This document shows positions 38,900 to 55,545 of a DNA stretch of 64,000 bases, piece after piece. The position numbers were made by a program, and so were the translations under genes. Origin of the DNA: Anthoceros angustus (Eukaryota > Plantae > Anthocerotophyta); NCBI GenBank assembly GCA_010909165.1, contig VJWM01000178.1, positions 372,001 through 436,000 on the forward strand, given 5' to 3'. The notes below the pieces were generated by a model that did not search any database, had not been told where the DNA came from, and saw nothing but the letters and a program-made list of their open reading frames with translations. Each line of letters starts with the position of its first letter. Within the stretch, counting starts at the first letter, position 1.

Positions 38900-39255
38900 G
38901 TGGGTGAGAAGGGCATGCGATGCAGCGGTGTGCCCAAGTGATGCCCATCGTGGATCTTCTTGGACGGTCATGTGATGAGGCAGAGTATTTTTCGCATACC
39001 ATGTCGTTTGAGAAGGATATCTCAGCGTGGAAAGCTTTGTTGAGTGCATGCAAGAGCTAAGGCGAAGTCGCGCATGGAAGGCCGTGCATTGACGGCCACT
39101 AACAGCTGGAACCTGACAAAGCAAGTTCGTATGTGCTGTTGGGGAGCATGTATGCAAATGCAGGCAGGATAGGATTGAATAGGATTGAAAGCTTGAGGAA
39201 GTCAGCAGGTGCTTTGAAAAAAGCTGCTAAGGCCACCCACCATTGAAGTAAGGAA
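38900..39255 (+). pseudogene. PPR S2/E1/E2 remnant ending in a KP-box-like motif
   Basis: IVDLLGRS..EAEYF..M.FEKDISAWKALLSACKS*, SYVLLGSMYANAG, LRKSAGALKKAAKA(T)..IEV. Confidence 0.75.
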
Positions 39256-45779: not shown

Positions 45780-45950
45780 CTTGTTCGTACCGGCTCCTTT
45801 GCTATGACAAGCTGGTGATGGCAGGCATCCAACGTAATGAAGTCACCTTCCTTTCACTTCTATCTGCCTGCAGTCATGCTGGCCAATTGTGGGAAGGTGT
45901 GAAGTGCTTCAAATCCATGGACAGATATCAGGGGATAGCTCCCAAAGCTG
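45780..45950 (+). pseudogene. PPR P2/L2 motif fragment
   Basis: AGIQRNEVTFLSLLSACSHAGQLWEGVKCFKSMDRYQGIAP. Confidence 0.8.
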
Positions 45951-45977
45951 CGCTGCTTGTGTGTTACCAAAAATTTG

Positions 45978-46330
45978 TCAATGCCGATCCCCACAGGAAC
46001 AAGAGCTATCGAGGAACCGATGCATTTGATGCGCATCTCTGACTATATTCTGTCCCTGCTCAAGCCGTGAATTAATGACCTTGGTGCTACTATTGCAATC
46101 ATTGCACATACGAACATTTTTAGTGACACGCCAAGTTGTGCCATCTGGTATATTGAGCACACCATACGCGAAGGCCAGTTTCTCAGCATGTCCACAGAGG
46201 GCATCTTCCTTCTCCTTCTCAGACACTGCCTTGAGCACCAACTCAATTTGTGGCACATGACCTCCTTCCTCCATCAACCTTGTTCACACTTGTCGGCTTT
46301 GATAAAATGTCGGACCTCTCTTCCCCTATG
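45978..46330 (-). pseudogene. Orphan DYW-like deaminase domain of the DYW:KP 'DRH' type
   Basis: GHVPQIELVL..EKEKEDALCGHAEKLAFAYG...KNVRMCNDC...IVRDAHQMHRF..SCSCGDRH*. No upstream PPR array is in frame. Confidence 0.85.
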
Positions 46331-47057: not shown

Positions 47058-47652
47058 ATGGCGATCCCGTCTGCTCTTCAACTCGCCTTGGTTCTGTTCT
47101 TCTCAGCCACGCTTGTCAGTGCAGGCAGTACTGCATCCAATTGCACTTCTGATGTCGTCGACCTTGTAAGATCCAAATCAACTGACCGAGATCTGTCGAT
47201 TTGCGTTTGAGAAATTTGGCTTCGCTTCTCGATTTCTCATCGTGAGTTTTGTTTTCGTTGTTCATCGCCAGCTCCAGTGCGGTGGCCAATCCCCGTGGTT
47301 CTTCGGAAACCCGATGTGCTGCTCTGCACCTGAATTTTCATACCTGCCGAACGCATCGTATTGCGTCGATCTGAATGAGGATCCTGACTTTTGCGGAGCT
47401 TGCAACCTCCGCTGCAGCGAGTACGAGCTATGCTGTCAGGGTTTATGCACCAACGTATATCAAGATGTGGCGAACTGCGGCCTTTGTGGCTACTCTTGTC
47501 CGGCGGGATACCAGTGCATTCCTCTCCATTACAACTCGAATAACAACACGTATAGCGCTAGCCCGGGGACATCGAATGACAACGACGACGCCGGATTTCC
47601 TGATTGCGTGTCTCCGGAAGGCATAGCACAGTTTGACGATTCTACGGCCTGA
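47058..47652 (+). CDS. STIG1-like secreted cysteine-rich protein, copy 2 (intact, 2 exons)
   Basis: Signal peptide MAIPSALQLALVLFFSATLVSA, intron 47166-47271, then LQCGGQSPWFFGNPMCC...CVDLNEDPDFCGACNLRC..CCQGLCTNVYQDVANCGLCGYSC, matching STIG1 Cys spacing. Confidence 0.85.
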
Positions 47653-48823: not shown

Positions 48824-49937
48824 TCATTTCTTGACATACGCGTAATATTGGGCCATGGGGACGATGAAGGCAATGACCAAGAGGCCACCAACAACTATTG
48901 TAAACTGTCCCCGCTTTTCGTCAGTTTCTTCCTTGGTTTTGAAGTTGGATTCCCTCTTGTTGTCCTGGAAGGTTGGGCCTCCGGGGTCTGGCAGACCGTC
49001 AATCGCTGCCACCAGACGTTTGGCAGTACTGTACAGGGCCTCGTTGTACTTCTCGTCAGTAGCCAGCACTGCATAATGACAAGAAAATGAGGGTGGCATG
49101 AGGGACTAGTAACGTTTCTCAGACACAGCAACTGAGAGCTGGAGGGTCGGCAGCAAGCTTAAGGCGGCCAGGCCCGCTCAATGTTGTTACCTGGCAAGTT
49201 CTCGGAAACCACTGCCTCCAAAACAGAGTCACCAGCCGCACCCGTGAAGGCTGGCCCCCCGGTGACAGCACCTTCCTTCTGGGTTGTGACCAGCAACACG
49301 ATTCCCTTATTGTTGCCCTCCTCTAGAGTTGGATACCACTTCTCCAATACTTGGTCCGCAAATTCAAAGGCGTCTGCCTTGCTCTGTAGGAGATGAGCGG
49401 AGGAATTAGAGCAGAGCAGGAAAAAGATGAATGGCGATACTATTTCAAGCAGTATCAAAGAGGAGGAGTTCGAACCGTGAGCTTGCGGAGGGTGATGAAG
49501 TTGATGTGGTAACCTTTGCGCTCCTCCAGGTCGGTGAGGAGCCTCTTGAGGTCGGATTTGGTCACCCGGTTGAGCACGCCGGCATCGTCAAAAATGTAAG
49601 TGGGAGGAGGCCCCTCGTTCAGCACATTGAATTCGCTGGCATTGGCCACCGGAGACTGCAGCGGGGATAGCTGCAAGGCCGCTGACAAGGCTAGGGCCGC
49701 GAGGGCATTACCCGCAGAAGCCAGCCGGTCGGAAAGGGCGCCCGCGCGCACAGACGTTGACGAGCGAGCAGTGAGCTTGAGAGAAGAAGAGGAGGTCGAG
49801 GAGGAGCAGCGCTCGCCCCACACAAGCGACGTGAGCTGCTGCTGCTGCTGCTGCTGCGCCGGAAGTTGAACCTGCTGAGGGTGCGGCAGCATCGAAGCCC
49901 GGCCAACGGTTTCCGCTATCGCCATCGCCATCGCCAT
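48824..49937 (-). CDS. TLP18.3: Thylakoid lumen protein TLP18.3 / Psb32-like (TPM domain), 3 exons
   Basis: Bipartite transit peptide ending ANA|SEFNVLNEGPP, DDAGVLNRVTKSDLK, INFITLRKLT|SKADAFEFADQVLEKWYP, DGLPDPGGPTF and a C-terminal TM segment VVGGLLVIAFIVPMAQYYAY. Confidence 0.95.
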
Positions 49938-50247
49938 GCCTTGAAGAACCAAACAGCAGAACACTTGCCTATTGCAAAAAGGAAGATATGCAAGAGAGCG
50001 TCCAACCTTAGCTTCCCCTCCACAGATCCACCAGAGCCAACCACGTCGGCATCACATAATCGCGGCACATCTGCTCTCCTCATCCAATCCAGTACTACCT
50101 ACTTTAGTGCAGGTAAGCAAAAGCGTAAAAAGTCCGCCATGAAAAACCAACACGTCAAAAAAGGCATTACCTAAGCCATTTCTTGGGCTGTTTTCATGCA
50201 GTTGGAAGAGGCGTATGTTCATTGTGCGTGGGAACAAGTTGCGGATC

Positions 50248-52045
50248 TCAGGTCCCAGGGTCACCACGGATGGATATAGGAAACCCGCTTTTCTGCAAAG
50301 GGCCACAAATGGCCCTAGCCAGCAGCCTATCTAAGTGTTGTAGAGTTGATGCCTCATCCAACAGTATCAAAGTCGAATGCAGGACCAGCACGTCTGCTCC
50401 CTTCAACTGGGAAAAGGCACCAGGATCTCTCATGTAGTCCTGGTTCAAACGGCCAAAACAGCGTGAGCAGGAGTTACACCAATACGTCCAGCAAGAGGAG
50501 TAGCTGCACACTTAAAGCAAGGAGAGGCAGCAGCAGTAGGCTCGCTGCTTACTTTTTCGGTTATGACAAGCAAGACCTTTTCCGGGAACTCCTGCTGCAA
50601 CTCCAAGATCTTTGCCTCTAACAAACTAATGTCCTGAGCAGGCAGAAGAGAAAGCTTTGAGCAAAATCATTGACGTGGCGGCAGATATGGAAATACTACA
50701 AACAAAATAGTGTTCAACTAACCTTCGATGTGAAGTGATGGTGGTCACTGAACATCATGTCCGCAACATGCAGAGGTCCCAGCTGCCACCACAAGGCGAG
50801 ACAAGCTATAAGGACGAGAACAGAAAGACAAAAAGAAAAAAGACAGTAAACCTCCTGGCCGACAGGATAATCTAACCTGCTTCACCACCAGTGACAAGGA
50901 CTCGGGACAGCCCACCCCAGAAACGCAAAGCACAACCTTGCCCTTCACCTTGCTCAAAGGCACAGTCAGGCTGTCCCCTACGTGAGCATCAGGCATTCTG
51001 CTCAAGTGCAAAGGAGCCATCCGTGAGTGCAAGCAGAGCGCATTGGCCTTCACCATCGACCTCAACCTAACCAACCGGGAGGATGGCACCTGCACAACCA
51101 TGGCCGAGTCCCTACAGATATTCCTCTCACCCAAGCCTTAATCTCAGACCTGTCCAACCTGTTTACAAACGCTTCTCACCAAGTCTGCATGATGAATGAC
51201 GACAACATCCGCCCTTCTCAACTCCTCCACAGGTTCTCTCAGAGGGCCTCGGGGCAACAACTTGCCATTCCCCCACCCAGTTAGCGCATTCACCATCACA
51301 ACCTCAAGGTCCTTCACCAACCCCCATTGCTGGACAACAGACGATACACCAATCAAACGAAGCCCCAGAAGAACCATAACGTGCTCCAGAGACAACACCT
51401 GATTCACACAAACTCTACCTGCATACCGTCATCCAGAATCACAACACCAATTCCGTGCATAGCCGAGCTTTCCATCGCTCCCTGAGGCGACACTTGGATA
51501 CCGCTCGCCCGCCTCCGGAGCTCCTCAGGGCCAACAACACCTCGCTCCCGCAGGAACCGCGCGGCCACACTCGCTCGATCAGCGCCACACCCGACATCCG
51601 CACGCGGCCGCAAATGCCTGGCAAGAAGGCGGACCTCGTCTCCTCCGCCATATCCCTGCACCCAGCTGCACACAATCAATGCATGAGCCCGAGCTCCAAT
51701 TGCAAAGCACCAGAACCCGCGGCAACACGGAATGCTCACCCGGCTAAGCACCAGGGGCCGGATTCCCGCTGCAATGCAGGCGCGGGCCAAAAACTCCGCC
51801 ATGGGCGTCTTCCCGGTTCCGCCCCAAGTGAGATTGCCCACGCTCAGGACCGCGACTGGCAGGCGGCGCTGGCGCAGCACTCGCCATCGGTACAGCACCA
51901 GGCGCAGGCGCAGCAAGCAGGAGTACACCAGAGACGCAGCGGAGAGCACCGGCTTCAGACTCCGCTCCAGCAGCGGCGCGGGCAGGGCCCGATCGTGGAC
52001 GCTGTCGGCCGACAGCCGCACCACCGCCTGCTTCACCCTCTCCAT
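50248..52045 (-). CDS. LPXK: Tetraacyldisaccharide 4'-kinase (lipid A pathway), multi-exon
   Basis: LPVAVLSVGNLTWGGTGKTPM (Walker A), LVLSR|GYGGGDE, VVILDDGMQ|, LEVVMVN..GWGNGKLLPRGPLREP..LRRADVVVIHH, LCVSGVGCPES, FSDHHHF. Confidence 0.92.
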
Positions 52046-52067
52046 CACGCCATAGCCGCCTTCATTC

Positions 52068-55000
52068 CTAAGCCCCACTCGTGTGGGTTTTGGAAAATTT
52101 GTCTCCCTCCAGATGTAGCAATTCCCCTCCTTGTTCCAGGTGAAAAACATCTCGCTGAGCCTTGCATGTAGCTACACCTCCAATCTCAAGATGCTTCGTA
52201 TCCCCAACCAAAAACCCATGCACCAGTCCATCCAAATCTGTCCACCAGCTCTGGCCTGGCTGCTTCCAGGCCCCATAACCAATTCTCCTCACCTGCATCT
52301 CCTGCGCATGATCCCACATCTGGGCACCCGTGTATATGCTCGACATCAACACATACGCTGCAGCGTCTTTCTTGTCGAGTTTCACTGCTTCATCAAAAGC
52401 ATGGCATCCCACCTCCACATTGCCCCACTTTCGACAAGCATTCAACAGAGTGTGCCAAACTGCAGCATTAGCTTGGACAGGCATTGCCCTTATCAATGCT
52501 AGCGACTCGTTGAGTTGGCCTGCACGGCCCAAGAGATCCACCATGCAAGTGTAGTGCTCCACTGTAGGACTGATGCCATAATCTTTCCTCATGGCCTCAA
52601 AGTACTCCCGCCCTTTGTCCACTAGCCCTGCATGACTGCATACTGTGAGTACACTAAGGAATGTGATGCTGGAAGGCTGTATGTCATCCTCTCTCATTCT
52701 GCAGAACAGGTCAAAGACCACTTCACTGTCTCCTTGACGAGTGTAGCCTGCAATCAGTGCATTCCAGGTGACAACATCTTTTTCAGGCAATGCCTCGAAC
52801 ACATGTTGCGCATCAAACATACTCCCTGATTTCCCATACATGTTTATCAAACTGCGGGCTACAAGGACATCAGCTTGGAGCCCTTGTTCTTTGATCTGTG
52901 CATGAAGCTGCTTTCCCATATGCAAAGCTGCTCCGTTTCCACATGCCTGCAGGAGGCAAGTATATGTAAACGAATCAGGTGCAACGACGCCTTCATCTGC
53001 CATAGCACTGTAAAGGCACAGAGCTTCCTGCCCCATTCCCTGTTGGGAATATCCTGCTATAAGTGTTGTCCATGTCACCACATTTTTCTCACAGAGCCCA
53101 TCAAAAACGCCCTGAGAATCCTCCAGACTGCCACACTTCGCGTACATGTTCACCAAACTGCTGGCTATAAACAAATCAGCTTGAAGCCCTCGTTCTTTAA
53201 TTTGTGCATGAAGCTCCTTCCCTTTATCCAAAGCTGGGGGGCCAACACATGCACATGCTTGAAGGAGGTACACAAATGTCAGCCCAACAGGTACTGCCAA
53301 GCCTTCTTCCTGCATTGTATTGTATCGACGGAGGGCTTCCTGACCCATGCCGTTTTGAGAATATCCTGCTATAAGAGCCGTCCACGTCACAATGTTTCTC
53401 TGACCAAGCCCGTCAAACACAGCCTGAGCATCTTCCATGCTGCCACACTTAGCATACATGTTAACCAAGCTTGACCCTAAAATCACATCAGCCTGAAGTC
53501 CTCGTTGTCTAATCTCTGCATGAAGCTGTTTCCCCTCTGCCAAAGCCCGGTTGCCTACACTTGCACATGCCTGCAGTAGAGAGACAAATGTTACACAATC
53601 CGGTACAGTAACGCCTTCTTCCTGCATAGCACTGTAAAGAAGAAGAGCTTCCTGACCCATGCCTTGCTTTGAGTATCCTGCTAAAAGCGCTGTCCATGTC
53701 ACCACATCTTTTTGAGTGAGTCCATCGAACACTCTCTGGGCGTCTCCAAGGCTGCCACACTTTGCATACATGTTCACCAAACAGTTGGCTATGAAGTCAT
53801 CAACTTGATGTCCTTGTTCTCTAATTTGTGCATGAAGCTGCCTACCCTTGTCCAAAGCCGAGGTGCCGACACTTGCACATGCCTGCAGGAGGCACACAAA
53901 AGTTACAGAATCAGGTGCAGCCACACCACCTTCTTGCATCATGCTGTAAAGGCGCAGTGCATCATGACCCATGCCCCGCTGGGAATATCCTGCTATCAAC
54001 GCGGTCCATGTCACGACATTCTTTTGACCGAGCCTGTCAAACACCACCTGAGCGTCGTCCAAGCTCCCACACTTGGCATACATGTTTACGAGGCTGCAGC
54101 CCAATAGGACTTCAGTCTCAAGTCCTTGTTCTCCAATCTGTGCATGAAGCTGTCTCCCCTTTTCCAAAGCTGGACCGCCCACACTTGCACATGCCTGCAG
54201 GAGAGATGCAAATGTCACAGCGTCGGGTACAGCAGTTCCTTCCTTCTGCATGGCACTGTAAAGACAGAGCGCTTCCTGAGCCATGCCCTGCTGCAAATAT
54301 CCTCCTAGCAAAGCTGTCCAGGTCACCACGTTCTTGTTACCAAGTCCGTCAAACACTCTCTGAGCGTCTTCCAAGCTGCCACACTTTGCATACATGTTCA
54401 CCAAGCTATTGGCCACAAACACATCAGCTTCATACCCTCCTTCACTAATTCTTGAGTGAAGCTGCTTACCAATTGCCAAACCTGGAGAGCCCACACTTGC
54501 ACAAGCCTGGAGGAGGCACAAGAAGGTTACAGAAGTAGGTGAAGCAGTAACTTCTTCTTCCATAGCACTGTAAAGACGAAGCGCTTCCCAGCCCAACCCC
54601 TGCTGGGAATATCCTGCTATTATGGCATTCCAAGTCACTATATCCTTTCGACCAAGTCCGTCAAACACTTTCTGAGCATCCTCCAAGCTGTCACACTTTG
54701 CATACATGTCCACCAGGGCATTACAAACAAACAAACTATGGTCACTCCCAGAGGCCAACACATCGGCATGCACCTGCTGCCCAGTTTTTAAGTCTGCTCC
54801 CCTTGCACAAGCCTGAAGGGCTGCCACAAACACATGCCCATCTGGCTTCACACCTGACCTTCGCATCCGCTTATACAGCTGTATGGCCTGCTCAGGTTTT
54901 CCGTGGCGAACATTTGCAGAAATGACGGAAGACCACATGAAGGCATCTGGTTTGGCAGCCACGGTAAACACATCCATCATTTCAGCCAACAGGGCATGGG

Positions 55001-55346
55001 CAGCATACATTCGCATGATGTGGTTGCACAAAAAAGTATCCGACTCATACCCCTTCATCACCACCAAAGCATGGACACGGCGACCCACAACCGGATCCCT
55101 CTGAGTTTCACACCTTTTTATGACAGCACGAAAAAGAGATTGAGCAATACAACAGTCTATCTGCACCAGAACTCCCAGAGCCTCCGCAGCTTCATTGAGC
55201 TGCCCCTGCTGACATAGATGGCTCACAGTTTCAGCCGTCACGTCCCACTGATATCCTGCAGCGCTGAATTTGAGGTCCGCCATCCCACCAACTTTCCTTG
55301 GCCGCCACAGTTGTCGCCCACTCCGTAGCTGAAGTGCAATACCCAT
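52068..55346 (-). CDS. PLS-class PPR protein (~8 PLS triplets, E1-E2, partial E+ with PGxSWW box), candidate organellar RNA-editing factor; start uncertain
   Basis: Intron-less ORF of >1000 aa with repeated LVNMYAKCGS.EDA..VFD / VVTWTALIAGY / VTFV.LLQACA motifs, HYTCMVDLLGRAG, VWHTLLNAC, YVLMSSIY and KQPGQSWWTD..VHGFLVGD. No DYW catalytic core. Confidence 0.95.
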   Translation of the reverse strand: MGIALQLRSGRQLWRPRKVGGMADLKFSAAGYQWDVTAETVSHLCQQGQLNEAAEALGVLVQIDCCIAQSLFRAVIKRCETQRDPVVGRRVHALVVMKGYESDTFLCNHIMRMYAAHALLAEMMDVFTVAAKPDAFMWSSVISANVRHGKPEQAIQLYKRMRRSGVKPDGHVFVAALQACARGADLKTGQQVHADVLASGSDHSLFVCNALVDMYAKCDSLEDAQKVFDGLGRKDIVTWNAIIAGYSQQGLGWEALRLYSAMEEEVTASPTSVTFLCLLQACASVGSPGLAIGKQLHSRISEGGYEADVFVANSLVNMYAKCGSLEDAQRVFDGLGNKNVVTWTALLGGYLQQGMAQEALCLYSAMQKEGTAVPDAVTFASLLQACASVGGPALEKGRQLHAQIGEQGLETEVLLGCSLVNMYAKCGSLDDAQVVFDRLGQKNVVTWTALIAGYSQRGMGHDALRLYSMMQEGGVAAPDSVTFVCLLQACASVGTSALDKGRQLHAQIREQGHQVDDFIANCLVNMYAKCGSLGDAQRVFDGLTQKDVVTWTALLAGYSKQGMGQEALLLYSAMQEEGVTVPDCVTFVSLLQACASVGNRALAEGKQLHAEIRQRGLQADVILGSSLVNMYAKCGSMEDAQAVFDGLGQRNIVTWTALIAGYSQNGMGQEALRRYNTMQEEGLAVPVGLTFVYLLQACACVGPPALDKGKELHAQIKERGLQADLFIASSLVNMYAKCGSLEDSQGVFDGLCEKNVVTWTTLIAGYSQQGMGQEALCLYSAMADEGVVAPDSFTYTCLLQACGNGAALHMGKQLHAQIKEQGLQADVLVARSLINMYGKSGSMFDAQHVFEALPEKDVVTWNALIAGYTRQGDSEVVFDLFCRMREDDIQPSSITFLSVLTVCSHAGLVDKGREYFEAMRKDYGISPTVEHYTCMVDLLGRAGQLNESLALIRAMPVQANAAVWHTLLNACRKWGNVEVGCHAFDEAVKLDKKDAAAYVLMSSIYTGAQMWDHAQEMQVRRIGYGAWKQPGQSWWTDLDGLVHGFLVGDTKHLEIGGVATCKAQRDVFHLEQGGELLHLEGDKFSKTHTSGA

Positions 55347-55466
55347 GATTTCCACAGGCACAGCCAACACCTGTGACGACGTGATTGAACCCGACGGAAC
55401 CCAGCTTTTGGCGGCCGGCTGGACTAGCTGAGCCAATTACAGTGTCCATGTCCAGATACGCTACCA

Positions 55467-55545
55467 GACAATAAAACGCTCGAACAATGAGCACACCAAG
55501 GTATGGACAATAAAACGCTCGAACAATGAGCACACCAAGGTATGG
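55467..55545. repeat. Perfect 39-bp tandem duplication upstream of the PPR ORF
   Basis: GACAATAAAACGCTCGAACAATGAGCACACCAAGGTATG x2. Confidence 0.9.

Follow-up and report, generated by a model that had tools for sequence, protein, structure and literature searches.

A PPR gene with a frameshifted E2 end and the adjoining LpxK gene of the hornwort Anthoceros angustus: two probably separate neighbours with overlapping transcripts

Introduction

Tandem overlapping or read-through transcription units occur in compact eukaryotic genomes. Here we describe a candidate of this kind in a 64,000-nucleotide (nt) stretch of the hornwort Anthoceros angustus (contig VJWM01000178.1, positions 372,001 to 436,000 of the forward strand; hereafter the window, whose own numbering is used for all coordinates). 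A gene for a pentatricopeptide repeat (PPR) protein is followed by a gene for LpxK, both on the minus strand. As in known overlapping or read-through units, the two lie side by side on one strand without an intergenic spacer, and RNA is continuous across their border in four taxa; the difference is that this continuity is known here from merged contigs and not from single molecules. We conclude that these are probably two separate nuclear genes, arranged head-to-tail in a compact plant genome, whose transcripts overlap in an old and conserved arrangement.

Plant LpxK, of which Arabidopsis AtLpxK is an example, is a tetraacyldisaccharide 4'-kinase, and database names annotate it as mitochondrial. 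The LpxK described here is like its plant counterparts in its PF02606 domain, its P-loop, its N-terminal start and its length of ~415 amino acids, and nothing in the protein sets it apart. What differs is the 5' flank, which here lies within the coding sequence of another gene.

For the PPR protein, the closest described systems are E/E+ PPR proteins; one of them, Arabidopsis CRR4, depends on DYW1, a protein with a DYW domain only, in trans (PMC5295000). The hornwort protein shares with the E/E+ proteins a long PLS tract, an E1 motif followed by a shortened E2 motif, and the lack of a DYW domain in cis, whereas its E2 end is frameshifted into an unrelated tail. CRR4 also has its trans partner DYW1, whereas near this PPR gene there is just an orphan DYW domain that appears decayed. 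Nothing new in kind is needed to account for the locus, which combines a PPR of the E class with an ordinary plant LpxK as overlapping neighbours in a compact genome.

Results and discussion

The junction and its transcripts

According to the open reading frame (ORF) list and the sequence itself, the PPR ORF extends over 1122 codons from 55436 to 52068 on the minus strand and stops with a TAG at 52070-52068, while the LpxK ATG stands at 52045-52043. The spacer after the PPR stop is only 22 nt (52067-52046), and the two transcription units must therefore overlap, in agreement with the first-pass annotation of this DNA, which had seen that a terminator plus a promoter would not fit in between. 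The positions it gave for the stop, the ATG, a palindrome, an inserted GCTA and an open frame of 41 codons all held when re-checked. The palindrome, TGTAGCTACA, lies at 52176-52167 and includes GCTA at 52172-52169; the LpxK frame has a TAG at 52174-52172, after which 41 open codons (LHARLSEMFFTWNKEG to GYGV) lead into MERVKQ. Taken alone, neither the palindrome nor its TA-NN-TA pattern nor the frame that stays open into LpxK is beyond chance, and each carries little weight, because the window offers many of its kind: 84 perfect palindromes of 10 nt, TANNTA at a frequency of 2.25 per kb, and 41 or more open codons upstream of 24% of all ATGs.

For organisms A to D, as they are called here, contigs from four public runs were aligned to 50200-55500. 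They skip the LpxK introns (intron 1 at 51740-51666, and joints at 50438/50552 and 50632/50722) and therefore derive from RNA. One contig per run joins spliced LpxK exons to the DNA upstream, ending at 52263-52271 (X1 rec3, X2 rec9, X3 rec22 and X20 rec15), and in all four organisms these contigs reach at least 220 nt into the PPR coding sequence. Over the exon-1 piece, from 51740 to the contig end, the differences from the window number 0/526 in run X1 (organism A), 28/532 in X2 (organism B), 31/531 in X3 (organism C) and 60/525 in X20 (organism D), that is, a divergence of ~5.5% for organisms B and C and ~11% for organism D. The stretch 52046-52265 (minus strand), which overlaps the 3' coding end of the PPR gene, is thus co-transcribed with the spliced LpxK exons, as LpxK leader, as PPR read-through or as both. 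Hence what overlaps the PPR 3' end is the leader or promoter of LpxK, transcription that reads through from the PPR gene, or both.

The PPR gene is itself transcribed: run X1 holds PPR-specific contigs with 0 differences, and matching contigs lie along the entire ORF, although all of them are short (200-600 nt). In LpxK intron 1, bin depths are fully accounted for by the exonic part of the one spliced contig (for X1, 17.4 x 103/177 = 10.1), and so there is no unspliced contig at this place. Summed contig depth rises ~250-fold at 52147-52323, at the beginning of the conserved 'KQPGQSWW' box. Since the depth jumps at this box and the PPR contigs are all short, a break of the assembly graph at family k-mers is a more likely cause of the shared contig end at 52263-52271 than a transcription start site. 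Contigs merge overlapping transcripts, and an internal start site and read-through look alike in them. The earlier proposal of an LpxK promoter embedded in PPR coding DNA accordingly fits the RNA continuity, but only as one of two arrangements, embedded leader and read-through, that contigs present in the same way.

The LpxK start and the fusion proposal

LpxK is encoded by seven exons on the minus strand, at 52045-51741, 51665-51419, 51329-51180, 51089-50877, 50782-50723, 50633-50553 and 50439-50248, which together make 415 codons from the ATG at 52045 to a TGA at 50250-50248. Exons were placed by a reference protein, splice sites were read from the sequence and exon phases were assigned by hand. 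The two contig joints given above and the ends of the aligned pieces at 51419, 51665, 50877 and 51086 agree with the exon borders. In a tblastn search with the LpxK of the moss Ceratodon, residues 2-400 of 414 aligned across the seven exons, and the Pfam LpxK model PF02606 scored 83.9 bits on a read-through of exons 1 and 2. The gene thus has the PF02606 domain and homology over its full length, together with the P-loop GNLTWGGTGKTP in exon 1, and the invariant G-N-x-x-W-G-G-x-G-K-T-P is kept in the N-terminal alignment; the kinase role is predicted on these grounds. Identity to moss, fern and seed-plant proteins is 41-44%. A word search of the protein collection with the LpxK ORF returned plant LpxKs only, at 35-57% identity and with no close relative among them, and an exact look-up of five ORFs of the window in the same collection gave no match.

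The N-terminus bears directly on the first-pass proposal of an ancestral or allelic PPR-LpxK chimera. The residues MERVKQAVVRL align with the very N-termini of seven plant LpxKs (moss, fern, seed plants and two Logan assemblies), which begin MERVKKAI..., MEQMKRSV..., MENLKRMV... and the like; nothing that corresponds to the 41 upstream codons is present in any of the seven. By these alignments LpxK is intact and its protein starts at the conserved methionine at 52045. The chimera proposal does not survive this match of the LpxK methionine with that of other plants, nor the finding that an open frame of this length is within chance. Moreover, similarity to PPR proteins stops ~80 nt ahead of the LpxK ATG, and organism D carries a 1-nt insertion behind 52104 that breaks the frame.

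A fused protein was also considered in its own right, and would include junction peptides such as HARLSEMFFTWNK. The two coding regions do not form one continuous frame: the LpxK frame is closed by the TAG at 52174-52172 and the PPR frame by that at 52070-52068. Together with the methionine and organism D, this leaves the fusion unsupported. In the literature collection searched, no paper naming both 'LpxK' and 'pentatricopeptide' was found.

The frameshift at the E2 end

A tail profile was built from the E2-DYW ends of 48 homologues. It matches the PPR frame at positions 2-92 with ~93 bits, and the match ends with GDTKHLEIGG at ~52176, which bears out the earlier remark that similarity in this frame is lost after GDTKHLEIGGV. 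In coordinates, the E1/E2 part in the PPR frame covers 52176-52451 (minus strand), from LLNACRKWGNVEVG to GDTKHLEIGG, where family similarity stops. The frameshift site is the palindrome at 52167-52176 (minus strand), with the GCTA as the best-fitting extra 4 nt. Beyond it, the neighbouring frame, which is that of LpxK, encodes HARLSEMFFTWNKEG at 52124-52168 (minus strand), apparently a remnant of the E2 end.

This neighbouring frame was attached to the PPR frame with an X at the break and the join was scored against the profile. The PPR frame by itself scores 93.2 bits; the join scores 98.1 bits with the spacing left by removal of 4 nt, 94.5 bits with that of a 1-nt removal and 93.9 bits with that of a 2-nt addition. 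Among 200 shuffled tails, each taken at the best of seven spacings, the 95th percentile was 95.2 bits and the maximum 100.1 bits, which corresponds to p ~0.01-0.02 for 98.1 bits. The spacing after 4-nt removal equals that in PPR relatives, for example HPDGGHVYALLEGLFLKAEEDG. The first-pass description of the neighbouring frame as E+-like thus receives modest support, with ~5 bits gained and only at this one spacing. Plausibly, the shifted frame is the old end of E2, and an insertion of 4 nt fits the family spacing best. Of the suggestion that removing GCTA joins PPR-E+ to LpxK, it is this spacing that stands, while the reading as a fusion fails, and profile similarity in the shifted frame stops at NKEG (52124). 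Neither the 42-residue shifted-frame peptide nor the last 90 PPR residues had a Pfam match even at E = 10, and BLASTP searches with the short shifted-frame and tail peptides gave nothing informative.

An error of sequencing or assembly, with the real gene reading through, would also produce an apparent extra 4 nt, and the first-pass annotation had asked for these letters to be confirmed. We found nothing in support of such an error, and it can practically be discounted: the X1 contig is identical over 51740-52265, and the contigs of the three other organisms likewise carry no indel at 52167-52176. As the RNA-derived contigs of four organisms carry the site without an indel, the frameshift is real rather than a product of assembly, and it arose before the four taxa diverged.

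The earlier attribution of the extra letters to a transposon fares less well. TA-NN-TA is the form of Tc1/mariner/Stowaway excision footprints, and the letters here do read TA-GC-TA inside the palindrome. However, this motif is common in the window and has no evidential weight. In contrast to a known footprint, no transposon, inverted or terminal repeat or empty-site allele was seen at the site, either in the window sequence or among the four organisms, which have the same length there. A transposon footprint is only a formal possibility.

The PPR tail and the state of the PPR gene

As now translated, the PPR protein ends in 34 residues, ATCKAQRDVFHLEQGGELLHLEGDKFSKTHTSGA (52071-52170, minus strand), which are unrelated to the family and match nothing by profile or BLAST. 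In organism B, 3 nt are deleted at 52126, inside this tail, and the 1-nt insertion of organism D, also inside it, shifts the PPR stop. The insertion puts the E2 remnant of organism D out of frame with LpxK, and since it breaks the frame, the tail and spacer are free of the coding constraint that a fusion would impose.

Such changes could be expected if the PPR gene were a decaying pseudogene, its frameshift marking lost function and its remains serving just as promoter or leader for LpxK. The E2 end is out of frame, the tail has indels in organisms B and D, and further PPR debris lies in the same window. We nevertheless regard decay as improbable, because the 3.4-kb frame is still open although the frameshift predates four taxa up to ~11% apart, matching transcript contigs lie along the whole ORF, and related proteins likewise terminate either here or just past E2.

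Overlapping neighbours or a shared messenger

The arrangement that we consider probable, two separate genes with overlapping transcripts, builds on what is seen directly in the sequence and contigs: the geometry of the junction, an old frameshift, an LpxK start shared with other plants, and RNA that is continuous over the junction in four taxa. An old small insertion, with 4 nt as the best fit, would have put the last ~15 codons of E2 out of frame, so that the PPR protein, of the DYW-less E/E+ kind, would now end in the 34-residue unrelated tail; this truncated protein presumably still works. LpxK would be expressed from one or more start sites within the PPR 3' coding region. PPR transcripts, with no room for a 3' untranslated region of their own, would run into LpxK before polyadenylation, and the PPR mRNAs would end inside LpxK or at the LpxK poly(A) site; of such read-through RNA only the first ORF would be translated.

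Several points weigh against this arrangement. Neither a start site nor a poly(A) site was observed, as the contigs show neither RNA ends nor strand. All four LpxK contigs stop at 52263-52271, which could be a real start site and not a graph break, and the four upstream ATGs of a leader like this would be an obstacle to translating LpxK. The frameshifted E2 could signal that the PPR gene is drifting towards a pseudogene. Finally, the comparison between organisms covers indels rather than substitutions at the PPR stop and LpxK start codons.

If the leader begins at or above 52265, the upstream ATGs are those at 52231, 52219, 52167 and 52150. The first two each start a short upstream ORF (uORF), and that at 52167 starts a uORF of 40 codons whose TGA overlaps the LpxK ATG (TGATG at 52047-52043). 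This overlap may be due to chance or may be a reinitiation arrangement. Translation from the ATG at 52150, which shares the LpxK frame, would add 35 residues; on inspection this extension has four glutamates, unlike a presequence.

These features raise the alternative of a true dicistron, in which one conserved PPR-LpxK mRNA would be the main source of LpxK through reinitiation or leaky scanning, for example by way of the 40-codon uORF. The TGATG stop-start overlap, the continuity of RNA over the junction in four organisms and the lack of any intron-retaining or separately ending contig are in its favour. However, reinitiation after an ORF of 1122 codons is unexpected in eukaryotes, the uORF ATG has a weak context (TACATGC) and its overlap is possibly chance, and contigs that merge overlapping transcripts show no single molecules. 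We therefore consider a true dicistron to have a small chance of being correct. Equally doubtful, in our judgement, is the broader proposition that the PPR and LpxK genes are transcribed together as a conserved unit in this lineage, with LpxK RNAs that begin in or upstream of the PPR gene and are governed by uORFs. If this were true, expression of a lipid-A-pathway enzyme would be coupled to an organelle RNA factor.

Two overlapping neighbours, as favoured here, are of practical concern for annotation: gene callers may merge or truncate such a pair, and the PPR gene is best recorded as DYW-less with a frameshifted E2 end, not as part of a fusion. The locus would also be a conserved example of a plant promoter or leader inside the coding sequence of a neighbour. 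It raises no new question on PPR proteins or on lipid A synthesis.

Architecture and relatives of the PPR protein

The PPR ORF is intact over its 1122 codons, counted from the first TTG; in-frame ATGs stand at 55346 and 55283, and the start is putative. Pfam finds PPR_2 (392 bits) and PPR (333 bits) across the whole ORF and E_motif (34.8 bits) at residues 1005-1064, with no match to DYW (PF14432) or to an E+ model. P, L and S motifs in tandem place the protein in the PLS class, and C-terminal E1 and E2 motifs are present, the last ~15 E2 residues out of frame only. A DYW deaminase domain in cis (HxE...CxxC...DYW) is absent from the ORF, and no frame between 52176 and 51700 matches the tail profile beyond position 108. 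Tandem Repeats Finder reports an internal array at 52940-54715 (minus strand) with a 312-nt period, equal to one P-L-S triplet of 104 amino acids, in 5.7 copies with 73% matches. Judging by this array, the PPR protein grew through internal tandem duplication.

The closest database relatives all come from a single Logan assembly; they carry a 'PGQSWWTD' signature, and their identity to this PPR across the final 243 residues is 53-63%. Because these relatives mostly end just past E2, without a DYW domain, the ancestor of this PPR was most likely already a DYW-less E/E+ protein. The most similar of them, P0139 (63% identity), ends in LESGGILSTSVHS, where the hornwort protein breaks; its C-terminal end, GDMRRLESGGILSTSVHS, compares with GDTKHLEIGGV at the break. 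P0139 and P0127, which are 61-63% identical to this PPR, may be paralogues of it, and the contigs of these two (L001 and L002) hold no LpxK. The 'PGQSWWTD'-box subfamily (Logan SRR33208241; L001 9452-12748, L002 1441-3834) is a sizeable DYW-less class in that organism.

Downstream genes and the orphan DYW domain

The first gene after LpxK, named TLP18.3/TPM-domain-like from its translation alone, lies at 48824-49964 (minus strand). It begins ~300 nt past the LpxK stop, and tight spacing is therefore normal locally. Beyond it, at 47058-47652 (plus strand), is a cysteine-rich STIG1-like gene, likewise named from translation alone.

An orphan DYW deaminase domain with no PPR tract is found at 45978-46283 (minus strand; ATG at 46274, ORF 46274-45981), 5.9 kb downstream of the PPR gene. 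In a six-frame scan it matched tail profile positions 104-198 with 111.7 bits, and Pfam DYW_deaminase scored 100 bits. It keeps HAE, CNDC and CSC. Its changes include H62N (CxDCH to CNDCN), H86R (HHF to HRF) and YW to RH (GDYW to GDRH); 22 of 53 conserved columns are altered, and its median identity is 43%, as against 66% among intact domains. On this evidence the orphan domain appears to be decayed.

The position of this domain allows the PPR gene to be read as half of a split gene, in which an ancestral PPR-DYW gene would have been broken at the E2/DYW border by a rearrangement, with the LpxK, TLP18.3-like and STIG1-like genes brought in between and the orphan ORF as the lost end. The profile coverage is suggestive, at 2-108 for the PPR and 100-198 for the orphan on the same strand and 5.9 kb apart, as is the Pfam score of the orphan. 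A split is nonetheless unlikely: the closest PPR relatives are natively DYW-less, the orphan domain appears decayed, and it adjoins debris of a different PPR, with ~35% identity to this one. Local nucleotide alignment of the two putative breakpoints also gave nothing (score 17), with no repeat. A giant intron linking the PPR gene to the orphan domain was rejected as well, as inspection revealed no donor/acceptor pair in compatible phase.

The debris consists of two fragments of another decayed PLS-class PPR gene, at 45803-45964 and 38947-39162 (both plus strand), each just ~35% identical to the main PPR. They encode P2/L2 and then S2/E1 and are contiguous in protein coordinates, yet in the DNA their order is broken and 7 kb separate them. 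The fragment at 38947-39162 has two in-frame stops, and that at 45803-45964 adjoins the orphan DYW domain tail to tail, which suggests old rearrangements.

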